Positions 25,101-60,754 of a DNA stretch of 64,000 nt are shown piece by piece. Source of the DNA: Obrimoposthia wandeli (lineage: Eukaryota); NCBI GenBank assembly GCA_977020255.1, contig CDROCS010000184.1, positions 1 through 64,000 on the forward strand, in the 5' to 3' direction. Numbering within the stretch: the stretch's first letter is position 1; every line of letters begins with the position of its first letter. Made by a program: the position numbers and the translations under genes. The notes beneath the pieces are model-generated. The model did no database searches. It was not told where the DNA came from and saw only the letters and a list, made by a program, of their open reading frames with translations.

Positions 25101-28100
25101 ATGTTTCATTTTTTAAGATAGTTATGAAAAACATTTTCAAATATAACTAGTAAAAAAATTCTAATTTATTTTATTGCAATTAAATAAATTTAGTTTGTTA
25201 TCTCAGTTACATCAGGTTTTCAAGTTTTCAAGCTATACATTTATAATTCATCACATTTTAGTGCAATTGTTCAGTTAAAAAGTTGATCGTACTACTGTTC
25301 AAAATGTATTTCAAGCTAAACTACGATCAAAAGGTCAATGTGGAGCAATAGTATCGAGAGTTCTTCCTTATCTTTATTCAGAAAGTATAGAAAGTGTAGG
25401 AAAACATATCTATGCTGACATTTTGACGATAGCTATTGATGAAATTGAAGAGGAGTACTTGGAATGATAAATGTTCCATGAACCAGTTTATGATCAAAAT
25501 TGGGGAATTTCTATATTAAAAAATAAAGCAATAGAAAATGATTTGAGGACGTACTACGAACAGTTCATTTCATTGAATAAAATATATCTAAAGTATGATT
25601 ACAAACAGATAAATTTGCGATGTTCTGTTAAATATGAAAATAATTTTGAAATTAAAGAAACTATGCTACAATGGCCACAATTGAACAAATGTATCTTGCT
25701 ATTGTACAAAATATGACTAATGAATTTGTGAATATATATATATATATATATATATATAGTAATTTATAGAAAAGGGTCTACACAGAGATGTGGAACATTA
25801 GAAAATTTAGCAAATCTCTGTCACATGCCTATAAGATCTCAAATTATATATATAAATAAATGTAATGTCAACATAATTTACTTGACAGACATTTACGACT
25901 TATAATGAACAATTCTTTTCTGATAGATTCTATTTCACCAAATATGAACTCTTCGTTTATAGATGAGCCTATGAGTAATTACAAAAAACTTCAAATAAGT
26001 TATCAGAAATGTAAATGTAAAAAATTGGAGAGATGATATGAAGTTCTTATACATTCTTATAGCCTGCAATTGATTGGAAAAAGCTTCCACCCATTCCTCA
26101 AGTACGGTGGAATTCAAAAGCTATTTTTACAAAGTTTTAATAGAATCCTGGCGATTAAAATTACAACCAATTTGCAGAATAATACGTAGGCCTTGGTAAA
26201 TTAAGGGTTTAATGATAAAAAATTCAACCAGACTCAGATAAAGAATTTATTAATTGTTTAGGGTCTTTTAGAATGAAAAAAACAATATCTAAATAAACGT
26301 TGGCAATCATTAGCTTCTCCTATCGATATTCTCAGAAGTAATCAAATACCAGAAAGGTCAATAAAAGATGTGAAAGAATTCATGTCAAATGATGTCACTG
26401 ACAAATATCTTTCAAATGGATTTTTTACGTCTAAATTGATCTGTATAGTTAATTGCTGGATATATATATTATACATTATATCACAATGTACTGTATTATC
26501 GTTTATATGTTTCTGGATGACGCTTGTTAATTAAATTTGATTATTTTTATAACTTATTAAGAGTTAAATTTCATTTATCTACCAAACAACTATTGTAAAA
26601 TTCGAAAAAAATCCTTCTTAGTCATAAGTCAAAATTGATAACAAAGAAAAACGAAATAGAACTACCACTAAATTAACCATTACTAACAGAAAGTTCTTTA
26701 TGTAAAACCAAGACATTTAAAACGAAGAATTCATGACAAAAAATAATGAATATCACTACTTTATTATGCAAAGATATAACAAAACGTAACATAAATAAAT
26801 AAAGTAAAAATCTAAATATCAACAAACTATATCTTTTATTTGAGTTTTTCTTTTATAAAACATTGGGAATTATTGCTAGTCGAATTATTTTTTGGCAAAT
26901 AATAAAGTTGTTTATTTGACTAACTACTGAGTTAATCTCAAAGTAAATGAGACCATGGATACAATTTTTATAAACATTTGTAAAATATATTACTATTAGA
27001 AGACTATTGAGATCAGTAAAAGTAAGATCTGATGATAATCTTGAGGCTCTTAATTTCTATAGTATTCCAGGTCTTAGTTGGTGTAGTGCAGTTAAATCTT
27101 TAACGCATAAAGTAGAACTAATACATGATCCAGAAATGTATAATCTTTTTGAAGCCGGTATTAGAGGTATAACTTTGGTCAATAAACATTATTGTTAAAC
27201 CGATGATAGTACATCTCTTCTCTAAATAGATGTAAATAATTTATACGGTTGGGCTTTAAGTCAACCTTTACCACATATGGATTTTAAGTGGGTGTATGAT
27301 AATTTTGATGATATTTTAAATTTAGTTGGAAGCAATAAGGATTTGAGTAAAAACTTATGGGGTTGTCTTGTTGAAATAGATTTACATATACCGGATCGTA
27401 TACATAATAAAGTTGATGATTTACCTTTTGGACCACATAAAATGTGTCCACCAAACTTAAAAACTCCTAAATAACAAATAACGACGTTCAGAAATACAAT
27501 CAAAAGATTGCTGGAAGATCGCTGGAAGGATTGACACCATCCAGGACAGTAAAAAAAGTTAGTTTATAGCCATTGAGGGACTAATTAATAATTGTACATG
27601 ACCGTAAGGATTTATTGATCTATCAGTAGCGGTACACCACAATGTGGGATTGTGTGCTGCTGATTGTGAGATAGGTGATATAAAACACATTTTGGATAAA
27701 GTTAATTATAAAAATATTGTGATTATATGTTTTAATTAAATTGAATAAAGGTGTTATTTTCAGAAAAAAGTTATGTTTTGCCAACTACTATCTAGCGATA
27801 AGCACTAAAGAGACTGAAAGGATGAGTTTAATTATTACAAAAGAGTGCCTTTAATTTTATCCATAACATTTTGGCTACTTCGAACCCTGTGTGTTTTGCG
27901 CTATTTGGGTTTCGTTTGACGACAAACCCAGACCCAGGAAAAATTATTTTGTCAACTGGGGTTGGTCGATCTAGTTACAATATAGTAAAAGCATCTGGTT
28001 TAGCTGGGCCCAGTTGACTAATTGAAAGTTGATCTGATGCAGTGACTGAATCGCCAGAATTGGGAAAAGGCAAGTTCAGTATCTGATATGCGTCGATTTC

Positions 28101-43100: not shown

Positions 43101-46100
43101 ATATTATTAACATACAAAATAAAACTGATTAATATTTAAGGATAAAACTTGAAATGTATTCTTTGTAAATAAATTTTCAATAATTTTTTATGATAGTTTT
43201 CTGATTTTCTAGACAGATTAAATGAAAAATTATTATTGCTTCTTGAATTAAATAGTCTTTACTTGTAAAACCAATTTAAATGGAATAAAACATGGTCACA
43301 AAGAATCGAGAAAAACACACCAAAATATGAAGAAATAAAATCAAGACAGATTGGGAATCTGGATTAAAATATAATGAAAATTATGGATTATTTTATATTT
43401 TATTTTAAAGATTTTTTTTCTGAATACTTTCTGCAGTTAGTTTCGAACGTAACCCTTATTTTTCTCACGATAAGCGATACAATGAATAATAAATATTCTC
43501 TATTTTAATGCGGAAAAGTATCGAAAAACTTCTTATTAGTCAGGAATCTTAAATAATGTTAATTAAACCTTTTTTCTAAATCAAACAAATAAAATTATTT
43601 TCTGATATTTTAACAATAAAAATTCCGAACTAAAAAATGACTAAAGTTCAAGGTTAAATTTTCATTTTGAGATTGACCAGACTTACGACATTTTCTTGGT
43701 TTTCCTTAATAATTTAACAAAATGTTGCTTTTGAATGTCTAAAATTCTCCCTCAAAACATGTGTGGATGTCTGTTGCAAATAATATCCCTTTTGAAATAG
43801 GGGAAATAATGTGCTCACACGTTCTGAATTTAACATAACGACCACACAGAAAAGCTACAATATTTATTATTTGAGTAATAGTATCTTTTAATTTTTATAT
43901 AGACTTGTAAGATTTGAAACTCATATTTACAGTATTGACAAAATTAATTGTGATAAATTTGAAATCTCCAATTTTAATGCAATAAACTCAACTATTACAT
44001 TTTTCACCCACTTAAAATTGAAAAAAAGTTAAATTTTGGAAGAAATACATTATATTTACGAAAAATTGCCCTAAAAACCACTTTAATATTATTGTGCTTT
44101 CTTTCTGTGTTTTTTTATTTTTTATTAGCCCTTAGATGGCCTTCTTCGGGATTTGAGCACTCTATGGGTGCACTATAAGATTTTCAGTTTTAAGGGCTCT
44201 AAAATGGGTTTGGAATGTATTTTGTGGTGGTGTTAGAGAAGGCAACCTGTTTTTAAGCTTTTATATAAAAAACATTCATTTTCAGAGTCCTATAAAGTTA
44301 TTTAGTGGCGGAGGTATGGTACAGTATGTAAACGCGAATAATTTCCAATACACATTGGGCATTTCAGAAGCTAACTTAAATGGTAGGCCAATAATCGTAG
44401 GTAGTTGCTCGAACTCGCTCTTGATCGAATTCAAGTATCCTATGCGCCTAATCTTCCTATTTCAGTTCGTAACTTTTACCGCTGTACTATCTGCCTTCAG
44501 TAAACTGCTCTTGGGTATCAGTTTGAAAAATTCTGAACGTGTAGATTTTTACACACAAGCCTGAAATTTCACTCCATACACACCAGCACAGTTTTAAAGG
44601 ACATATGTCCATTTCTATGGGAGATGGGGTGGATTAGACTTGACACATTCACCTACTAAAATAATCAGAGCTTTATTATATAAATAGTTTTTATCAGCTG
44701 TATTCTAGTGCTATACTAAATAATATATGTTTATGAATAGTAATAAAACATAACATAAATTTTAAAATATTCACCTTTATATAATGATAATCGCAAAACG
44801 ACATTTTGTTTTCATTGAACATGCATATGTAAAGCTTTGGCGTGTAAATGTGTGTGGCGATGTTTGCAGTGATTGTAGTGTCATTTGAATGTAAGATGAT
44901 TCAGACAATTGAACATGCAATCACTTGAATTTTGTTAACTAGATGAAATCAGATTCTTCAAAAATAGACGAAAAATTGTCACAATAAAATAGTTTCATAA
45001 GTTTTCTAACTGCAATTTGGAGTTACGATGGTCGAAATATAATTTGCTATCCATTACTTTGAACATCTTGATATGAAAAAGTTATGGTTACAAATGACAC
45101 ATTTTATTGATTTTTTGATAACTATAAATAAATAAGTATATTTCAATATTTACTTTTGTGGCTATAAAAACTTATTTAGACTATTTGGGTACAATTTGAC
45201 GCCATTAAACGAAAATGAACAACAATATATATTTATTATAGCACTAATATGTAATAAATCTTTGATTAAATACTCAAAATAGCTTATTGTTTTCGATTAA
45301 TCTTCGAAATCATTTACGCCAACACCCGTCGAAATAAGTCATACTATAATAATAACAAAGAAACCTAACCGTCAAACGTCTAATGCTTGCGTCGGCCGTA
45401 TGTCCAAAAATGAATGTACTCCGGAGAATATTTCCAAAAATGACAAACGTTGTTCCAATAGACACATATCTCCCTACTTACATAAGTATCCATAAAATTC
45501 ATAATCAACATAATTTATTTACATCAACAATTTCCTTAAGTTAATTTAATTTTGTATGTATACACACTGTACTTTGTGACCTACTAGGATTTGAAGTTGC
45601 AGCTGTTATTTTGAATCACCTATACACCAAGTGTTCAATTATACTCAAATATCATTAAATGATTTTTTATCACAAATAAATGCAGAGACAATTTATACAC
45701 AAACTCAACATAGATATAGTAAAATGTTGTAGTTCTTTATTTATAGTTACAATAAAATAACTTAAATGTGTCATTTGAAACAATTTATTTTCCAACTCAA
45801 GATATTACAAGTAATGAATAGTAAATTATGTTTCGACAACTACAATCCCAAATTGTAGGGAGAAAAAGTTATAAAACCATTTGATTGTAACAATTTTATG
45901 ACCTTATCAGAGTACCCACATTTTAATAATTAAATAAAATTTATGTGATTTCCAAATATTTTCTTAAGGTTATTTGGTATTAAAATGTATATTAAATATC
46001 TAAATATTTAAATATAGCAAACCTAAAATTTAAAAAAATAGCATGTAACTTTTAAATACGCTAACATAAAAAATTCAAATTTTGATTCATTTATAAAAAA

Positions 46101-49100
46101 TTTAATTGAAGTTTGATATAAAATAATTTTTAAATATTTCGTTTGATTGATGATATTTTATTTTGATTAAAAGCGAAAGGGTCAAATTCTGAAGTAGTAC
46201 CACAATTTTTCGTCTATTGTTTGAGAATCTGATTTTATCCAGTTAACAAAATTCAAGTGATTGCATGTTCAATTGTCTGAATCATCTTACATTCAAATGA
46301 CACTACAATAACTGCAAACATCAGCTTTACACACTACAGCTTTACATATACATGTTTAATGAAAACAAATGTATCATCATATGAATCTGAATATATTAAT
46401 ATTGCCTTTTTTAATGAACATTTTAAAAGTATAAAAAAATGAAAAAGTACATTAAAAGTATTTAAAAGTAAAATTTATATTTTTTAACTTTTCCTGTATT
46501 TCTTCAATGTAAAAACAAATGTAAAAATTAACCTAATTATAAATAATAAATTAAAAAAAAAGTGACTGTAATTTTATCGAGGAATTTTAAGTCAAACACG
46601 ATATTACTTAAGCAACCAGACTTTTAAAAAAGGTATGCAACGGGTTATTAATTTTATTATGACACTTAAACATAACGAAAGTATCATTAAGAATTCACAA
46701 AAAAATTGAAAGTAAAACACATACAGCAAATGTAAAATGGCATATTCTCACAGACGTGTCAAAAATGTAAAGAACTGATTTATATTTTTTCATTTCCAGT
46801 GGCACGAAAAGGCTTAATAAATTCTTTAATCATAATACTTCGATTTCTATGCACATATGACTGCTAAACCTGTGAGTTTCTTGTCTACCATAGTACTTCT
46901 CATGGAGGTCTCCAGAAGCCTCCGACTGCTCCACCTTTGTTGCCCGGTAGAATTGGATAAAGTTATCTTTACAATTGAATGGATAACTAGCTCTGACAGC
47001 CGCCGGGAAAGAGGAACTTTATAGCAAACTAATTGCGTTTGAGTGTTTCCAGATTTCATATTAGGCTTCGACATTTCCACATCAAGTCGTCTTGGAACGT
47101 GTGTACCTTTCATATCTTCTGCTGCTTCAATGTACAGCTCATCATTCAAATTTTAACAAATATTTTCAAAGAGAAACTAAATATTTGAGGGGGATGAAAA
47201 ATTTCATTTGTGTATTTCATTTATAATATCATTTTTAATATTATACTGAATAAATAAAAAATGATGACACGCTCAACTATTCAAGAAATCATCAATTATC
47301 AAAAAGCTATTCTTTTATTTATCTGTTAATAATTTGAAATTCATTAATTTATCTTAAAACAATTTTGATTTCTATTTAAACTTAATTTTTTTCAAATTTT
47401 GAATGTTTAAATATTTCAAAAATTAAGTCCAAAATTTTACAGAAAGAAACATAAATGAAGCCAAGAAGACAACTTAAAGCTACAAGTAATCCGAGCAAAA
47501 GTACTGCTTAGTTGAAGTAAGAATTAAATTTAAAAGTGTTCAAGTCAAACAAATGTCTCAAAGTCATCTTCAGAGTAGTTTAGATTTTTGGAAATCGAAT
47601 ATTTGAAAAAATTGATCATACCTGTAATTTACTGGCGAGAAAAATGAAATTTATATAGACCGATGCCCCACAATCATTATTGGCATGCTCTTCGAAAAGA
47701 GCTTTTATTTTGTAGCAGATGACAGTTTGGTAGTGAATTTCTAACGGTTTGGAGTGCCATGTGCGATTAACAAATACATTTTTAAACAAAAGTTAAATAA
47801 ACAAACTTGCTTTATACTCTAGGTGACCTTTACTAAATGAACTATACTGTAGATTACAACGTTCAAATAAAGAAACTATTAAAAGCAAATTAAAATTGCG
47901 TGTTTTTAAATTTATATTTTTGCATGGATATTGCAGAATAGGAATAATGGAAATAAAAAAGAATTTTATAAGAAGATAGAGTGTTCGATAAAAAGTTTTA
48001 GAAGCTGACAGATTTATGAGCATGTTTATATATGTTTACATATTTATGTATGTAAAGTTAAATTTATGAAAACATTCTGTATCAAACAGTACCAATTAAA
48101 GCGGCATGTGGTTCTCTCAGCCAGTGAAACTAAATGTATCGGTCTTTTCAAATTGTACTTTGATACTGAATATGGTTACGATGACTTATAATATTTTGGA
48201 GTTTCCGTAACTTGGCTTCTTAATTTTATAAGAATTAAACAAAAATTTGTATAAAAGTATAATACAAAACGAATTATAAAAACTCTACCAATTCTACTTG
48301 TTTTGATAACTAGCCTCTAGATTCTATTCTATCTATTGCGGAAAGACCAAGATTTGCAGGCCAGCATGTTAGATAAATTTTAATAAAAATTACAGCTCTA
48401 CAAATTCAATCAAATTTTTGAAGATTTGGTGAATGAAAAAAGCTGGGAAATTTCTTCAAAAAATCACATGATATTATTTTATTGAATTAATTTAAATTTG
48501 TAAAAAACAGCATTCGCACTTTATGTGTTTTTGAACATGATTGTATTTTGTCATATGTAATTTAGTATGTAACATTACAATATTAATAATACAAAACCGC
48601 TTCCTCTTAATTTGATTTTGTTTCAATGCTGCTCACAGCTGGATGTTTATTACTTAATGTGGTCCTTAGTTGTAAATGAGTGTGACAAGTCTTTACACGG
48701 CACCATTCAATTTTTGTAATACACCCTATAGTAAAAAATCACAGTCAATCTTTTCCTGTCCTGTGGGTGTGTGACTGTATGCTTTCTAAAGTAAGTAATT
48801 ATTCAGTTTTTACGGCACCCTTCATTTTTGATAGATGCTGTTTTTATCGGTAAGTTTTACTATGTATTATTATTAATCTTATTCTTATACTATAGGATTG
48901 TGTGCCGACTTTTTACAACGGCAATAATCAGTTGGACTAGGTGTATGGATCAATTTATTATGTTGAGAACAGGGCCTGGTCCTGAAGAACTCCTATATAT
49001 CGCTATATTGACCACCCTGTATTTTGGTGCCCCTGCAACTTGAGTTGCATCATAAATATGGTCTCAAGGTTGTAAATATTGTTGGTTTAATTTTATCAAT

Positions 49101-53626: not shown

Positions 53627-55690
53627 TGTTTTCTATCGTTTATATTATTCAGTTTAAAATAGTAATACTTAAACAAATAATTGCAAGTGGGATAATTCCG
53701 GTTTCTGATTACATAACTCTCTCCTTCTCTATTCAAATTTGCACTTCTTCAGCCATTCGATTCTTCTAGAGAGTATTCCTCTTAGAAACTTAATTGATAC
53801 TTGTCGTGAACTCAAAAATTATATTATTATATATGGGCCTTCATACAGATCACTATCATTATTTTTTTATTGGATCCTTTTTAATAAGCACCTTTTCATT
53901 TACTTCAAATATCCTTTCTCCTCTTCTTTCATTATCTAACTTCTTTAACTTTTCAGCTGCGATTTGTTGATCCTTTTTTACGTCTTGAATGATATCAACT
54001 TGGTTTTCTAAATGCTTTGGTTGTCGTCTAGGATTTTGACAAATTGGATCAGCAATAGTCTCAATCCTATGATTGAAAATTTTGGTTTTTCTTAGATCAA
54101 ATTTAGAACACATAAATATTTTCCCAAACTCCTAAACATAATGTCCTAGAATTAAGTCTCTATCACATTTTATAGAATTACATATTTTATCTGTTCTTTC
54201 TTTTATCATGCAAGACGAGTCCAAACAACATACTTCCTGAAGCTTTATCCCAAATATTTTTATTGTATCAATTCTACAAATAAAATCTGGTTTAATTTTT
54301 TCTGCAACGAGTATTTCCTAAAACTTTCTACTTTCTATTTCATAACACTTTAGTATTAAACCTACCTAAAGGCTGTTGATGACTATTCGAAAAAATTCCA
54401 CTCAGATATAAATTACTTTCTCATTTTGTGACATCCTACATTTTTCCAACAATCCTTACTCATTACAGTAACTGATGATTCGGAGTCACACAGCATTTTC
54501 TCATCTACATCATTAATCTTCATTATACTCCATTCACGATCATCATTCTTCATATACATCTTTTCATTCAGCTTTGGTTCTATATGCTCGATCCCACCGA
54601 CGGAATGTGAGCAATGTGATCGCTCACGTTTCCCTGATGAACATCATGTATTATCATGTCTTTATTATAACAACCTTCTACATCTTCATTATTTTCTCCC
54701 ACTTCTTCTGTTATACAAAGTACCTTTGAAGTTTTTTGTGGGGTTTTTAAAAAATAGCAGCTGTTGAAATTGTGACCTTCTTTTCGCAAATCAAAAATTT
54801 GTGATTGAGAGGACATTGATTTCGGAAATTACCTTTTTCACCACAACACAAAAATGCTCCTTTTTGTGACAGGCAGTCCCTTGGCTAAGTTATATATTTT
54901 TTTAGCTATTTGTTTTAATGAAAACCTTGGCATTGATCTTCTATTATTTTGATTTTGGGCATTTCTATTTATGTATATATTTTTTTCTTCATTAACATAT
55001 CTTCTTTCTTACTGAAGTACTAGTACTGATACTGGGTGTTTCTTTCTATTATTTGAGAAATGACAGTTGTCAGGATGGTTGTATTATATTTTTTACTGTA
55101 TTTGCATATGTATTCTGAACTTATGCACGCTCGTTTTTCTTTTTCTCAATTTCGCTATAAACCTTTGCCAACGCCTCTATTTCTTCTTTTGGCATTTGCG
55201 ATTTTAATTAGAACTGCTCATGAAGTTTTTCACTTCTTACTCTTTAGTTAATAAAGCTCATCTTTGCTAACATTATTTTATATCATGGTCTCAACGAGTT
55301 TTTTTAACTCTAATGCTGAGCGCTGAGAAACATTCGCCTTCTACTTGCTTCACTTTTTCGAGTTCGCAAATTTTGTCACCTATGGATATTTTTTCTAGGA
55401 AAGTTTCTTCAAACCATTTTTGACTTCGATTTCTGAATTTACCCTTTTACTGCCATTCTTCCATAATCAAATCAAATACATTTCAATTATTAGTTTCATT
55501 TGAGTCGACCCATTCTCATATATTTTAACCATTTTTCACCTTCCTTTGAACTCATTCCATTGTATCTTCTTATTTTGTACTGAAACATCATTCTTTGCTC
55601 TTTTGGCATAGTCTCGAGAATATTCTTCTTTGATTGACTTCTAGTCACTACATTTATTTCGGCGTGGTCGCCATTTATGTTTTCTATCGT
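53627..55690 (-). mobile_element. Internally deleted Ty3/gypsy LTR retrotransposon
   Basis: PBS-like TGGCGACCAC (55673 down), decayed gag with CCHC knuckles (CCGEKGNFRNQC), protease MLCDSESSVTV, short RT start, integrase tail YEGPYII, PPT 53717-53730, then TG-starting 3' LTR 53713-53627. Confidence 0.85.
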
Positions 55691-56250
55691 ACTATCACTA
55701 CACTATCTATTTTATAATCTTTTGAAAACATTTTCAGTTCCACTACAGTCTTTGGTCTCGTTTCAAGTAACAACACTTTTGCTACTCTACCAGGAACATT
55801 TCTAACCGAATTAGATGAGATAATATCCCGTTTATTACGAGCTACTATTTGTAGACTATCAAAACTGAATTGAAGAGCTTCTTTTTTAGATTCAAAATTA
55901 ATTTTAATAACTTGAAGAAATTTTAATCGATTTTTAAATCTGACTTTGTTATTTTCATATATTACTTTCACTTCTTTATCTATACAATTGTAATAGAATT
56001 TTCCTTTACTATCAAACCCGATCACAACTTTAGTTGTTTTTTCATGATCAACTTCTTTTGTAAACGAAATATGTGAGTTTTTTCTGATAGTAATTGGAGA
56101 ATAATAAAAAGAAAATTCTGTTAAAGCCGCTTCCCATTCTCCTTGGAGATTTATAGAATTTTCCCAATCGATAATAAAGCTACTAGCGTAATTATCTGGT
56201 TGAGTCTTCGGACATCCGTTACTTGGTAAAACCATATACATAGAATTCAT
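55691..56250 (-). CDS. Minor capsid (penton-like) protein, C-terminally truncated
   Basis: MYMVLPSN..P.N..SSF......I.L.GEWE.AL.EF N-terminus typical of Polinton minor capsid ORFs; the stop is supplied by LTR sequence. Confidence 0.7.
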
Positions 56251-57274
56251 ATTATATTAGATGCTGATATCCAAGTTGGGTCTGAATAACCATGCCATTT
56301 AACAAAGTATTGTTTATGTTTACCTGTACCCTTAGATTTTAATATTTTTTGAATACGGAAAACGCTAGGTTTATTTGATATTACTTGTAGTTCTTGCTCG
56401 TAAAATTTACTGTGAACGATATTATTGTCAGCATCTTTAATAGTATACATTATTGGATTACTCTTTTGATCAATTTTACTTATACAAAATATTTCATCGC
56501 TCCAATTCTGATCAAAGTTTTTAATAAATGGAGTAGAGCTAATTTTCGAAATTCGAACATATTCGTTTTTCTTATATTTAGCTTTTTAATTTTATCTTTT
56601 TTATTCCTGTTCATCCAAATGTCCATAGAGTTTTTATTAGTAACATCAACAGGTCTCATTCCCTTGAGACCTCTATGTTCAGAGTGATTATATGCATGTA
56701 TTATTTTAGGTAAAACTTGGATCCATTTTTTATTTCCTTCTTTTGTGAAATACTTTTTTATTCGATCTCTTAGAGTACGATTAAATCTTTCTACTACTGC
56801 TGCTTTGTATTGTGAAAACACAGAGTAATGATTTATATTATTTTGTTTAAATAATGATTGAACTTGCTTATTATAAAATTCTTTTCCTAAATCAGTTTGC
56901 ACATTTTGTGGAATGTCCTCTTTTAATATTTCTTTAATGGCTTCAAGCATAGCTATTGAAGACTTTGCTTTAACTGGAATTGCACGAGCAAACCTGCTAA
57001 ATACATCAATACATGTTAAAATATATCGATATCCCTTATTAATGGAAGAATATGGGATCATCTCCATCAAATCCATTTGCCATAAATTATTAGGACCGAT
57101 GGTTTTGTAATCTCTAGTTGGAAACCTTCTTCTCATCGGCTTGTTCAGACTGTAGGCTAACTGATCGCTCAGCCATTTCTGCATTTTCTTGTAATTTTGT
57201 TTTGTTCTTTTTGCTAATTTTGAAACTCCTGTGTAGCTAATTGGATCTTTTGGATTGAACCATATCTTCTCCAT
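56247..57274 (-). pseudogene. RVE integrase with C-terminal chromodomain, one frameshift at A5 run 56583-56587
   Basis: WQMDL..YILTCIDVFSRF..QTDLGKEF..VERFNRTL (D-D-E); continues FKxGxxVRIS-like KNEYVRISK..NWSDEIF..FYEQELQ..YFVKWHGY..TWI; ATGA overlap with the capsid ORF. Confidence 0.92.
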
Positions 57275-57360
57275 TAAAACAATTTGAATAGAAAGAAAAT
57301 TTAAGTTTAGGTAAAGAAGGCCTAGCACCCATATCTTTAGCTGATTTTAGAAATAATTGT

Positions 57361-57691
57361 TTATGAACGTGTCGCAGCTATAATACTACTGATAATTGAA
57401 GCAACAACTGGAATAACAGCCCCTATGAAACCACCATTCTGTTTAAGAATAATATTTCGTTTCCTTTTTTTTACTTTTTACATTAGCAATATCTAGAAGA
57501 GTTTTTCTATATTTCTTTAATATATTTTTCCGATTTCCAACTTTTACTCGACCCAAAACTATATTATACAAAACTTCCAATAAATCATCTACAACAAAAG
57601 ATGGAAATGCTTTAAGAATAATCATTCTCTTATGAGAAGAGGCTTTGACTAAAGCTTTAAAATAGGGTATGCTTCATTGTATTTTCTTCAT
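57361..57691 (-). pseudogene. Small basic virion protein with KQNGGFIGAVIP amphipathic tail
   Basis: Basic helical ORF ending QxGGF plus hydrophobic helix, as commonly seen in Polinton small ORFs; one TGA at codon 6 and one shift in A8 run 57465-57472. Confidence 0.6.
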
Positions 57692-57737: not shown

Positions 57738-57863
57738 TTAAAGTTTTTTTTTATTTCTAACTACAGATTTGATTAATTTTTTCACTTCTTTTTTCTTAAT
57801 GATTCTTTTTTTTGATTTCTTAGATTTTACTTTACGTTTTACTATCAACTTTGTAAAAGGCAT
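57738..57863 (-). CDS. 41-aa Lys-rich putative DNA-condensing protein
   Basis: MPFTKLIVKRKVKSKKSKKRIIKKKEVKKLIKSVVRNKKKL (20 of 41 residues K/R); ATG 7 nt after the ATPase stop. Confidence 0.45.
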   Translation of the reverse strand: MPFTKLIVKRKVKSKKSKKRIIKKKEVKKLIKSVVRNKKKL

Positions 57864-57870
57864 TGCGAAT

Positions 57871-58517
57871 TTATTTTTTATAATTGTTCTCTATTTGTTT
57901 ATAAACAGTTACTCCCTTAGAATTAAATATGTCTGTTAAAACACGTAAATCATCTGGGCAAGCTTGTGTAAAGTCAATAAATATATACCCATGTGCTTGT
58001 TTAGCAGCATCGTGGAATGAATCAACTAGAAAGTTCTTATTTTGAGGCAATGCCTGTCTGGCCACAAAATCAACAACTGTTTGATCTCTAGGATTTTTAA
58101 ATAAAACTAAGTAATGTACATTAAGATTTCTTGTTCTATGGTGACCTCCTTGGTGAAACAGATTTTGAGTGATAAATATAACTGTAACTTCACGATGTCT
58201 TGCAATCTTTGTAAATAAATTATTAAAGTCCGATTCCTTGTTAGCCTCCTCATACAAATCATCATTATTATTACATCTTCTTTTTTCAATCTTTCACACC
58301 AATTTGCATCAAATCCTTCAATAAATTTTATACCCTTCAACTTGCAAACTTCTGTTTTGGTTAACCCGCTTTCCCCTCCTCCACCATGATGCCAATAAAT
58401 ATTTTTGAAACTAGATTTGAAAAGAGATTCATTTTGCAACAATTTACAGACGAAATGTGTCTTTCCACTTCCACTTGGGCCAACTATTTGAAATACAGCA
58501 TTATTATTTAGCTCCAT
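57871..58517 (-). pseudogene. FtsK/A32-like genome packaging ATPase, frameshift at about 58265
   Basis: Walker A GPSGSGKT, Walker B VII.DDL split by a 1-nt loss, LFTKIARH..ITQNLF..RT..LN.HY..LFKNPRD..YIFIDF. Confidence 0.92.
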
Positions 58518-58554
58518 TGCATATACTCTTTCATTTTTAATATTGTTTATATTA

Positions 58555-58797
58555 TCATAGAAGTTTCCTTATTGAAATGTACAATGTTAGAGCTATTGTA
58601 GATGAAATACAAAAATTAATTAATGAATATTTGGCTATAATTTTATTTATTTGTGTACGATTTCTAAATTCTTGAATAACGTGTGATCTAACCAATATTT
58701 CAATGTTCTCTCTTGTTATATCATTATTTTTTAATTCTGATAAAATTTCTTTACCCCTAATGTTTCCAGAAAATATTTCATCGGCAAGCCGATCCAC
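58555..58797 (-). CDS. 80-aa hypothetical protein with C-terminal hydrophobic helix
   Basis: Fills the gap between TBP-like gene and ATPase; GTG start uncertain. Confidence 0.45.
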   Translation of the reverse strand: MDRLADEIFSGNIRGKEILSELKNNDITRENIEILVRSHVIQEFRNRTQINKIIAKYSLINFCISSTIALTLYISIRKLL

Positions 58798-58807
58798 TTC
58801 ATTGTCT

Positions 58808-59349
58808 CTATTTATTCATTTGAAACAATAAGTTTAAACGGGTTTGTTTATAGAAAAAAGATAACAAGATGTAATAAGATATATTTTCTAAAATCAAATC
58901 AACTATGTCTGGATAATCAAAGTTTTTCAATCCCAATATCATAACTTTACCACTGGAAAATATATTTACACATAGCGGTTTAAACTTCAAATAACTGAGA
59001 GCAGGAAAAATTTCTGGTTTAAACATGCATTCTTCTTTCATTTTCTCTGCAGTTTTAAAAAGATTTATCTGTTTCCCGAGATTAGCCGAAATCGTGATTG
59101 ATTGTATTGCAGTGATTTGAATTCCAAATGGTAAATTGAACCCAAGCATTGGTATTTTGCATCCCATAACACGACAATTTCCTAAAGAATTCAATATGAA
59201 AATAAAATAAAAAACTAACCTGTAGGAAAAATAACAACTGTGAAATTGTCAAACTTTTCTACATATTGTCTCGGCTTCCATTCATTGAATGGTAAGTACG
59301 AAACATCATCTTCTGTTCTACCTTTATAATTTATATTTACGAGTTTCAT
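58808..59349 (-). CDS. TATA-binding-protein (TBP)-like protein, 167 aa, join(59349-59220, 59181-58808)
   Basis: Repeat 1: KLVNINY..VVIFPT|GNCRVMGCK. Repeat 2: IQSITISANLGKQINL..FKPEIFPALSY..VNIFSSGKVMILGLK. A 38-nt GTTAGT..CTTTAG intron removes a stop and restores the IFxxG motif. Confidence 0.85.
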
Positions 59350-59352
59350 TAG

Positions 59353-59387
59353 ACTGAAATTGTATTCTGTAAAATCTTCTTTATATA
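59353..59387 (-). promoter_or_regulatory. TATA box plus Inr of the TBP-like gene
   Basis: TATATAAAG (59387-59379) with TCAGT (59357-59353) 30 nt downstream, ATG at 59349. Confidence 0.6.
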
Positions 59388-60233: not shown

Positions 60234-60504
60234 NNNNNNNNNNNNNNNNNNNNNNNNNNNNNNNNNNNNNNNNNNNNNNNNNNNNNNNNNNNNNNNNNNN
60301 NNNNNNNNNNNNNNNNNNNNNNNNNNNNNNNNNNNNNNNNNNNNNNNNNNNNNNNNNNNNNNNNNNNNNNNNNNNNNNNNNNNNNNNNNNNNNNNNNNNN
60401 NNNNNNNNNNNNNNNNNNNNNNNNNNNNNNNNNNNNNNNNNNNNNNNNNNNNNNNNNNNNNNNNNNNNNNNNNNNNNNNNNNNNNNNNNNNNNNNNNNNN
60501 NNNN
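60234..60504. other. Assembly gap (271 N)
   Basis: N run flanked by a hairpin and a tandem repeat. Confidence 1.
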
Positions 60505-60610
60505 GTACATCGCCAAGCTAGTCTGTGACCTATATGAGAACGAGATATCCGTACATCGTCAAGCTAGTCTGTGACCTATATGAGAACGAGATATCCGTAC
60601 ATCTGTGACC
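60505..60610. repeat. 46-bp tandem repeat, two copies plus a partial third
   Basis: GTACATCG(C/T)CAAGCTAGTCTGTGACCTATATGAGAACGAGATATCC at 60505 and 60551. Confidence 0.95.
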
Positions 60611-60668
60611 AATGTCGGTCCCGAGCCCTTCGCGCCGATAGGCGCTAAAAAGTTTTAGGGGGGGGGGT

Positions 60669-60754
60669 ACCCCCCTTGTCCTTTAAAACCGTGCATGTGT
60701 GTGGAGTGAAATTTCACTCCACACACATGCACGGTTTTAAAGGACAAGGGGGGT
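60669..60754. repeat. Perfect 86-bp palindrome without a loop
   Basis: 43-bp arm ACCCCCCTTGTCC..GGAGTGAAA followed by its exact reverse complement; centre 60711/60712. Confidence 0.97.

Follow-up and report, generated by a model that had tools for sequence, protein, structure and literature searches.

The 64,000-nucleotide stretch of DNA analysed here (the window) carries on its minus strand, at 59349–58808, a gene for a shortened TATA-binding protein (TBP) of a family that is borne by Polinton (Maverick) elements and is referred to here as TBPL. The family comprises at least 86 short TBP-like proteins, occurs almost exclusively beside Polinton genes and was shown to be a near-constant component of one clade of 16–17-kb Polintons bounded by terminal inverted repeats (TIRs). 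That TBPL is a TBP-family protein with a TBP fold made of 'one and a half' repeats can be stated with high confidence, and it is probably the element's own promoter-recognition factor. Taken as a whole, a Polinton-borne family of shortened TBPs together with its promoter mechanism is the best explanation we can offer, and one towards which we lean without strong conviction.

The TBPL locus consists of two open pieces, A (59349–59220) and B (59181–58808). A 44-codon frame starts from the ATG at 59349 (minus strand) and closes right after ..VIFPTG; the second frame is an open reading frame (ORF) at 59194–58808 (minus strand) that carries NCRVMGCK...PEIFPAL...VNIFSSGKVMILGLK. The gene was read as two exons:

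59220–59349, minus strand: TBPL exon 1 (130 nt), encoding amino acids (aa) 1–43 and the first base of the Gly-44 codon
59182–59219, minus strand: TBPL intron (38 nt, GT..AG, phase 1), in the Gly codon of ..FPTG/NCRVMGCK..
58808–59181, minus strand: TBPL exon 2, stop codon included, matched by Pfam PF00352 and by the family hidden Markov model (HMM)

Exon 1 encodes strand S1 (LVNINYKG) together with the VIFPTG strand of a shortened repeat 1, and exon 2 the end of repeat 1 (NCRVMGCK) followed by the whole of repeat 2 with PEIFPAL and VNIFSSGK. Joined unaltered, the exons gave a protein of 167 aa with no internal stop. This is the length given in an earlier reading of the same DNA (the original prediction), and the strings LVNI, VIFPTG, PEIFPAL and NIFSSGK that it had picked out are all present. 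Exon 2 alone passed the Pfam TBP threshold (PF00352, E = 1.4e-11, 44.5 bits against a cut-off of 22.9), while exon 1 alone, with most of repeat 1 (a shortened half of about 60 aa), was undetected by Pfam TBP. The earlier claim of two TBP pseudo-repeats therefore stood for repeat 2, which is complete, and only in part for repeat 1.

The exons were joined only to test the splice model, because a relative, L053 (L-numbered names denote related contigs or loci), has the intron in common. Against a family HMM built without the window sequence, the joined exons gave a single domain over positions 1–151 with 172.9 bits; separately, exon 1 scored 37.1 bits (positions 1–46) and exon 2 122.4 bits (positions 48–151), the pieces abutting at HMM positions 46 and 48. 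Relatives aligned colinearly to both pieces in tblastn, with no residue missing or added. In L053, whose protein is 51% identical, a 40-nt GT..AG phase-1 intron lies in the same Gly codon (..FQTG/NCRIMGCK; L053:376–415), and L064 has a 40-nt GT..AG intron at a different position of TBPL (L064:5229–5268); 59 of the 62 loci are uninterrupted at the window's intron point. The presence of short introns of the spliceosomal type in three members suggests that expression passes through the host nucleus, and introns of around 40 nt seem to be usual in the hosts of the clade. TBPL genes are an exception to the published generalization that introns are lacking in endogenous viruses (PMC10120064).

A word-indexed protein search with exon 2 gave only three matches; an exhaustive profile search returned 1812 proteins at E ≤ 1e-3, 45 of them at E ≤ 1e-30. 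Among 165 sequences examined, 86 matched the whole profile in one stretch, with a median length of 164 aa, and all 42 aligned family members matched Pfam TBP. Some members are already labelled TBP by the automatic annotation of IMG; no relatives were found among the IMG/VR viral contigs scanned with the family profile. In the numbering of P0002, the closest uninterrupted relative of the window protein, three DNA-wedging Phe are conserved (F41 in 99%, F106 and F122 in 100% of members), together with N5 (94%), M49 (100%), E104 (98%) and N120 (100%), and the window protein retains every one of these residues. The position of the fourth Phe, in repeat 1, is variable, with Phe in just 13% of members and, by register, Gln or Tyr as the candidate residue in the window. 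Of the two strand-S1 Asn at the pseudo-dyad, that of repeat 1 is kept in 94% of members, whereas repeat 2 has Ser (85%) or Thr (15%) at the position that aligns with the strand-S1 Asn of an archaeal TBP. The pattern noted at the outset for the window protein, with three Phe and the first-strand Asn kept and the fourth Phe and the second Asn altered, thus holds for the family. The stirrup motif, which aligns with that of cellular TBP, is near-invariant (E104, F106), the core of the concave face is conserved, and the proteins are basic, with a median pI of 9.3 for the family and a pI of 9.1 for the window protein.

The structure was modelled with AlphaFold2 for P0002, not for the window protein, from a 42-member alignment; the two proteins are 52% identical over exon 2, and the window pieces are colinear with P0002. 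The model was of high quality (pLDDT 96.7, pTM 0.87). In Foldseek searches against the Protein Data Bank (PDB) its top 44 matches were all TBPs, of human, yeast, plant, microsporidian and archaeal origin (E about 1e-8, TM-score 0.64–0.75, 20–26% identity), and the next match beyond them had E = 0.03. P0002 aligned to whole TBP cores over 165–181 columns and has their two-repeat saddle. Its repeat 1 (approximately residues 1–60) consists of four strands and no helices, in place of the full order S1-H1-S2-S3-S4-S5-H2, while repeat 2 is complete (strand, helix, four strands, helix). In the predicted structure repeat 1 is thus shown to be cut down to β-strands and the C-terminal repeat to be kept in full. 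Since repeat 1 is a helix-less half, TFIIA, Mot1 and NC2 may find no docking surface on it. A profile search of the PDB aligned only the second half of the family, to both TBP repeats. Among predicted viral structures (BFVD) the best matches were giant-virus TBPs (9–17% identity, E from 2e-8 to 1e-3). The expected membership in the TBP family is borne out by Pfam with exon 2 and by the model of P0002, which in the PDB matched only TBPs.

Hallmark Polinton genes were present on 30 of the 62 contigs carrying TBPL, the remainder being mostly shorter than 3 kb. Three arrangements were distinguished. In arrangement A, which is the order of the window and was found in 17 loci including L050 and L058, TBPL is followed by the ATPase, a small gene, the integrase, a 350-aa gene, a 400-aa gene and the protease, with the protein-primed polymerase B (pPolB) on the opposite strand (PF03175, 97.8 bits in L050 and 76.8 bits in L058). 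In arrangement B (13 loci, including L063 from an NCBI assembly) TBPL comes after the protease, and in arrangement C (3 loci) it is divergent from the ATPase. The protease is adenain-like (Pfam Peptidase_C5, 28 bits in L002). No sequence matches to the 400-aa protein were found in the PDB profile search or in Pfam; its model (pLDDT 90.3) matched the double jelly-roll capsid proteins of iridovirus, Sputnik, PBCV-1 and mavirus (E from 1e-17 to 1e-14), which identifies it, from the predicted fold, as a double jelly-roll capsid protein. TBPL was present in all four of the long contigs whose selection rested solely on the capsid gene. Two of the four, L064 and L066, are elements that measure about 16.2 and 17.3 kb and have TIRs at their ends; TBPL lies 2–3.5 kb from one end in them. 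The gene set of the clade therefore includes pPolB, the rve integrase, an A32-like ATPase, the adenain-like protease and the capsid protein, and the linkage of TBPL homologues to Polinton genes anticipated in the original prediction was confirmed in the relatives. Accessory genes beside TBPL code for a TRAF/MATH protein (L064:3952–4941), a ubiquitin-conjugating E2 enzyme (L050:222–719, minus strand), a KilA-N protein (L058:7142–8002) and a C2H2 zinc-finger protein (L001:1104–1568).

In a tree built by neighbour joining from repeat-2 sequences, the window protein grouped with the 86 short proteins in one clade (87 tips), which contained none of the 30 repeat segments from the 14 ordinary two-repeat TBPs in the match list. 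The window protein was at most 41.6% identical to canonical repeats and up to 52.8% identical to family members.

A survey of 154 regions upstream of ORFs of at least 100 aa, on 19 related contigs, revealed a promoter-like box. The string ATAAAC was found 90 times against 14.5 expected, in 86 of the 154 regions and in sense orientation, and its start lay at a median of approximately 37–40 nt before the ATG (interquartile range 33–48). It was preceded by T (74%) and followed by A or G (82 and 18%), giving TATAAAC(A/G). The box was distributed unevenly among the gene classes:

ATPase genes: TATAAAC 25–60 nt upstream in 16 of 20 (median 35.5 nt); ATAAAC in 20 of 20
capsid genes: TATAAAC 25–60 nt upstream in 6 of 10; ATAAAC within 100 nt in 10 of 10
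TBPL genes: TATAAAC 25–60 nt upstream in 1 of 53; plain TATAAA in 19 of 53
integrase genes: TATAAAC 25–60 nt upstream in 0 of 14
protease genes: TATAAAC 25–60 nt upstream in 1 of 10

Many small genes of these elements likewise have the box about 37 nt ahead of their ATG. Integrase and protease genes abut or overlap the preceding gene. These elements were thereby shown to have two promoter classes, and the presence of TATAAAC on ATPase and capsid genes but not on TBPL genes suggests a private promoter code. No published account of a TATAAAC box in Polinton elements was found in the literature search. In the window, the box before TBPL is of the ordinary TATA-like type and differs from the TATAAAC type found near the other genes:

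59379–59385, minus strand: TATAAAG box, within TATATAAAG, starting 36 nt upstream of the TBPL ATG (read from the sequence)
58545–58551, minus strand: TATAAAC box, starting 34 nt upstream of the ATPase ATG (58517), the usual spacing in the family
57897–57903, minus strand: TATAAAC box, starting 40 nt upstream of the ATG (57863) of a 41-aa Lys-rich ORF
58846–58852, minus strand: TATAAAC box in the last TBPL codons, 55 nt before the GTG of an 80-aa ORF (58555–58797)

The 80-aa ORF at 58555–58797 (minus strand) had no homologues in our searches and is of uncertain status as a gene.

In TBP complexes, the 5' half of the box is held by the C-terminal repeat, the stirrup of which contacts TFIIB or TFB; the 3' half is held by the N-terminal repeat, with helices that assist in docking regulators. 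For TBPL, binding and bending of DNA and recruitment of TFIIB/TFB are predicted from the stirrup motif, the basic charge and the position-locked TATAAAC. In the mechanism we propose, TBPL would be made from an ordinary host-type promoter and would then occupy the TATAAAC(A/G) boxes of the element, about 37 nt before the ATG of the ATPase, the capsid gene and several small genes. The retained C-terminal half would recruit host TFIIB and RNA polymerase II (Pol II), and the protein would be blind to those host regulators that need the missing repeat-1 helices. The 3' half of the box, which deviates from the cellular consensus by a C at position 7, would be met by the altered repeat 1, in which one Phe wedge is lost; the second pseudo-dyad Asn is changed as well. 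We put the chances that TBPL acts on TATAAAC boxes in this manner at close to even, perhaps slightly below. A stricter version, in which a host-type promoter makes a minimal TBP that alone reads the private TATAAAC on packaging and capsid genes and recruits Pol II, is offered as a tentative proposal with the balance of probability against it. If true, such a two-step programme would mean an escape from host TBP regulators and an independent parallel to the TBP mimic of herpesvirus late genes, and at 16–17 kb these elements would, to our knowledge, be among the smallest virus-like genomes with a core-promoter recognition factor of their own.

TBPL might alternatively act as a decoy or repressor that soaks up TFIIB or another TBP partner, or that blocks host TATA boxes unproductively, with the outcome that host transcription, or the element's own, is damped. 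The near-invariant C-terminal stirrup would suit such a role (E104 98%, F106 100%), and with the repeat-1 helices and one Phe wedge lost and the second Asn changed, a full pre-initiation complex may not assemble. We nevertheless judge a decoy unlikely: the three wedge Phe, the strand residues and the strong basic charge are all conserved, although a pure protein decoy would need none of them, and a box at a locked position before ATPase and capsid genes, which the TBPL gene itself lacks, fits better with an activator cascade. The positional motif thus favours promoter recognition over a decoy.

Less probable still is a role outside transcription, in which TBPL would bend or mark element DNA that is to be replicated, integrated or packaged, perhaps at the termini or in the service of the neighbouring ATPase. 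The proteins are basic, as this would lead one to expect, and in 17 loci TBPL immediately precedes the ATPase, at 2–3.5 kb from a TIR; the adjacency is not conserved, however, because in 13 loci TBPL follows the protease at the opposite end of the morphogenesis block and in 3 it is divergent from the ATPase, and no TBP-family member with such a role came up in any search.

Several points weigh against promoter recognition by TBPL and the family framework around it. The link between TBPL and TATAAAC is correlative, and the box includes TATAAA, which host TBP could read unaided. TATAAAC is not enriched across the window as a whole (31 found vs. 28.6 expected). With a Phe wedge and an Asn lost and the repeat-1 helices gone, DNA bending may be different or may fail. 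The modelled structure is that of a 52%-identical relative and not that of the window protein, the tree is a neighbour-joining tree without support values, and the related contigs are kin to each other, so that counts drawn from them are not independent.

Compared with cellular TBP (PF00352), TBPL belongs to the same sequence family and has the same saddle fold with a complete C-terminal repeat, the stirrup motif, both Phe of repeat 2 and one of repeat 1. It differs in the size of its core (approximately 150–165 aa vs. about 180), in a repeat 1 without helices, in the absence of one Phe wedge and of the second pseudo-dyad Asn, in its separate clade, and in being encoded by a mobile virus-like element. 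Giant viruses are known to encode TBPs, and those of Nucleocytoviricota (giant viruses, phycodnaviruses, asfarviruses) share the TBP fold but are larger (186–500 aa) and only 9–17% identical to TBPL. The Nucleocytoviricota proteins work in cytoplasmic factories for an RNA polymerase that the virus itself encodes; among the related Polinton contigs examined, none showed a gene for such a polymerase. Among cellular paralogues, TRF2/TLF of animals is a host gene product with both full repeats and with its Phe wedges lost; like TBPL it has diverged from TBP and has altered DNA-contact residues, and it serves a subset of promoters. No TRF2 chain was named among the matches of the PDB profile search or of Foldseek.

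The herpesvirus late-gene TBP mimic (KSHV ORF24, HCMV UL87, EBV BcRF1) brings host Pol II to a variant box before late structural genes. It is the closest functional counterpart of the mechanism proposed for TBPL. The likeness would be one of function only, the mimic being a nuclear DNA virus's own reader of a TATA-type box, a role that TBPL would share. The herpesvirus mimics are much larger and act within a six-protein viral complex. No sequence matches were found between ORF24, UL87 or BcRF1 and the TBPL family, and the herpesvirus fold matches were weak (Ranid herpesvirus 2 ORF75 and elephant herpesvirus U58, E from 5e-3 to 1e-2).

The original prediction did not count TBP-like factors among the known cargo of Polintons, but TBP in such viruses had been noted earlier. 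A 'TBP' gene is drawn in MELD viruses with an adintovirus-like PolB in the legend to Fig. 5 of Starrett et al. (2021, Virus Evol; PMC8502044). As in TBPL-bearing elements, a TBP-like gene is placed there in a mid-size Polinton-type genome, and the same legend also has TRAF and UCH genes, the former recalling the TRAF/MATH gene that adjoins TBPL in L064 (PMC8502044). As far as that figure legend goes, the 'TBP' is a label, with no analysis of sequence, structure, family or promoters attached to it (PMC8502044). The legend's gene was compared with TBPL by label and may be of the same family or of another. Literature searches on Polinton or Maverick together with TBP or TATA found this legend only, and the recent surveys they covered make no mention of TBP. 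We found no paper that analyses the TBPL family, its shortened architecture or its promoter box; the TBP gene label itself was already known.

A stripped-down, self-encoded TBP together with a position-locked variant TATA box would, if the proposal is true, provide a handle, testable with sequence and expression data, on the control of Polinton/Maverick genes in the host nucleus. For structural biology TBPL would offer a natural 'minimal TBP' that bears on which parts of the saddle can go. The family is also a useful annotation marker of this Polinton clade, and 'TBP' calls in metagenomes may be viral.

The element in the window is a decayed 3.7-kb Polinton relic at 55.7–59.4 kb; its TBPL frame is intact and the element is dead. 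Only five homologous genes are left in it: TBPL, the ATPase, the small gene, the integrase and about 148 residues of the next gene. TBPL lies directly upstream of the P-loop packaging ATPase on the same strand, and the other parts, with a distant pPolB fragment, are as follows:

57871–58517, minus strand: packaging ATPase (A32/FtsK-type P-loop), with one frameshift and no stops
57738–57863, minus strand: 41-aa Lys-rich ORF, between the ATPase and integrase genes
57403–57691, minus strand: small conserved gene, with one frameshift and one stop; approximately 104–115 aa in relatives
56247–57328, minus strand: integrase (rve core and C-terminal chromodomain), with one frameshift
55684–56250, minus strand: N-terminal part of the post-integrase gene, truncated; the element ends here
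27016–27471, plus strand: isolated pPolB fragment of 456 nt, 50% identical to aa 409–561 of the L050 pPolB (E = 2e-39)

The ATPase is of the A32/FtsK type, being 65–68% identical to the ATPases of L006 and L007; its pieces in the window gave only weak Pfam P-loop matches (Pox_A32 14.7 bits, below the cut-off), while the L050 orthologue scored 26.7 bits against a cut-off of 22.8. In the place of the Lys-rich ORF, relatives have genes of 41–64 aa (41 aa in L063, 64 aa in L008), which were matched by position only; the ORF may be the gene of a small basic protein, a candidate DNA-condensing core protein. The small conserved gene is 38% identical to the small proteins of L006 and L007 in tblastn. 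The integrase is an rve integrase (Pfam rve 49.8 bits, Chromo 27 bits) with 52–56% identity to relatives. The post-integrase gene is 346–407 aa long in relatives, and its homology in the window extends over about 148 residues (L007 aa 1–148 vs. 56250–55798, tblastn). The frame changes in the ATPase and integrase genes were considered as introns and rejected as such, as the matched pieces abut without extra DNA.

No protein-primed polymerase B is present in the 55.7–59.4 kb relic, and neither a capsid nor an adenain-like protease gene was matched anywhere in the 64-kb window. The pPolB fragment, at a distance of 28 kb, is encoded on the strand opposite to that of the relic, which is also its orientation in complete relatives; it could stem from the same broken-up copy or from another one. 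No TIRs were found within 30–64 kb; a gap of N at 60234–60504 may hide one end. The earlier placement of TBPL between the ATPase and the terminus is accordingly right as regards the adjoining ATPase and agrees with complete relatives, but the window itself yielded no terminus. The same applies to the earlier picture of a Polinton-like virus with its own TBP: the family is linked to Polintons, whereas the window copy is truncated and frameshifted and lacks capsid, protease and polymerase.

That the window TBPL was kept for host use after the element had died is very improbable in our view. TBPL is the sole unbroken gene of the relic, keeps every family-invariant residue and has a spliceable intron and a TATA-like box, all of which would be in keeping with such domestication. 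Yet it has no breaks besides the intron where the neighbouring genes have about 4 per 2.4 kb, and from these break counts the chance of an intact 501-nt frame without selection was estimated at approximately 0.4. Because of this density of breaks in the neighbours, the intact frame is no evidence of selection, and we rejected it as a sign thereof.

That a recent retrocopy or pseudogene of host TBP had landed inside the element is refuted: the two have the fold in common and nothing more, while solved cellular TBPs are only 20–26% identical to the model, the window protein nests in the short-family clade apart from canonical repeats, the family is syntenic with Polinton genes across many contigs, and the gene has an intron, which retrocopies lack.

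Other repeats and degraded sequences surround the relic. An Rfam scan of the window gave no matches. Upstream, the gap of N at 60234–60504 is followed by a 46-nt tandem repeat at 60505–60603 (2.2 copies, 98%) and then by a perfect 86-nt palindrome at 60669–60754, part of one arm of which recurs at 44578–44603; the region 60234–60754 may be another repeat element and could hide the upstream end of the relic. Directly past the truncated end of the relic, the stretch 53750–55750 has a strong strand asymmetry (GC skew −0.23, AT skew −0.21), and its short minus-strand ORFs had no Pfam matches; it may represent a further mobile element, now degraded, by which the Polinton was cut. At 44805–46369, inverted repeats of 121 nt (95%) and 44 nt (89%) flank approximately 1.2–1.5 kb with a nested pair of 137 nt (77%), which looks like a foldback or MITE-like element.

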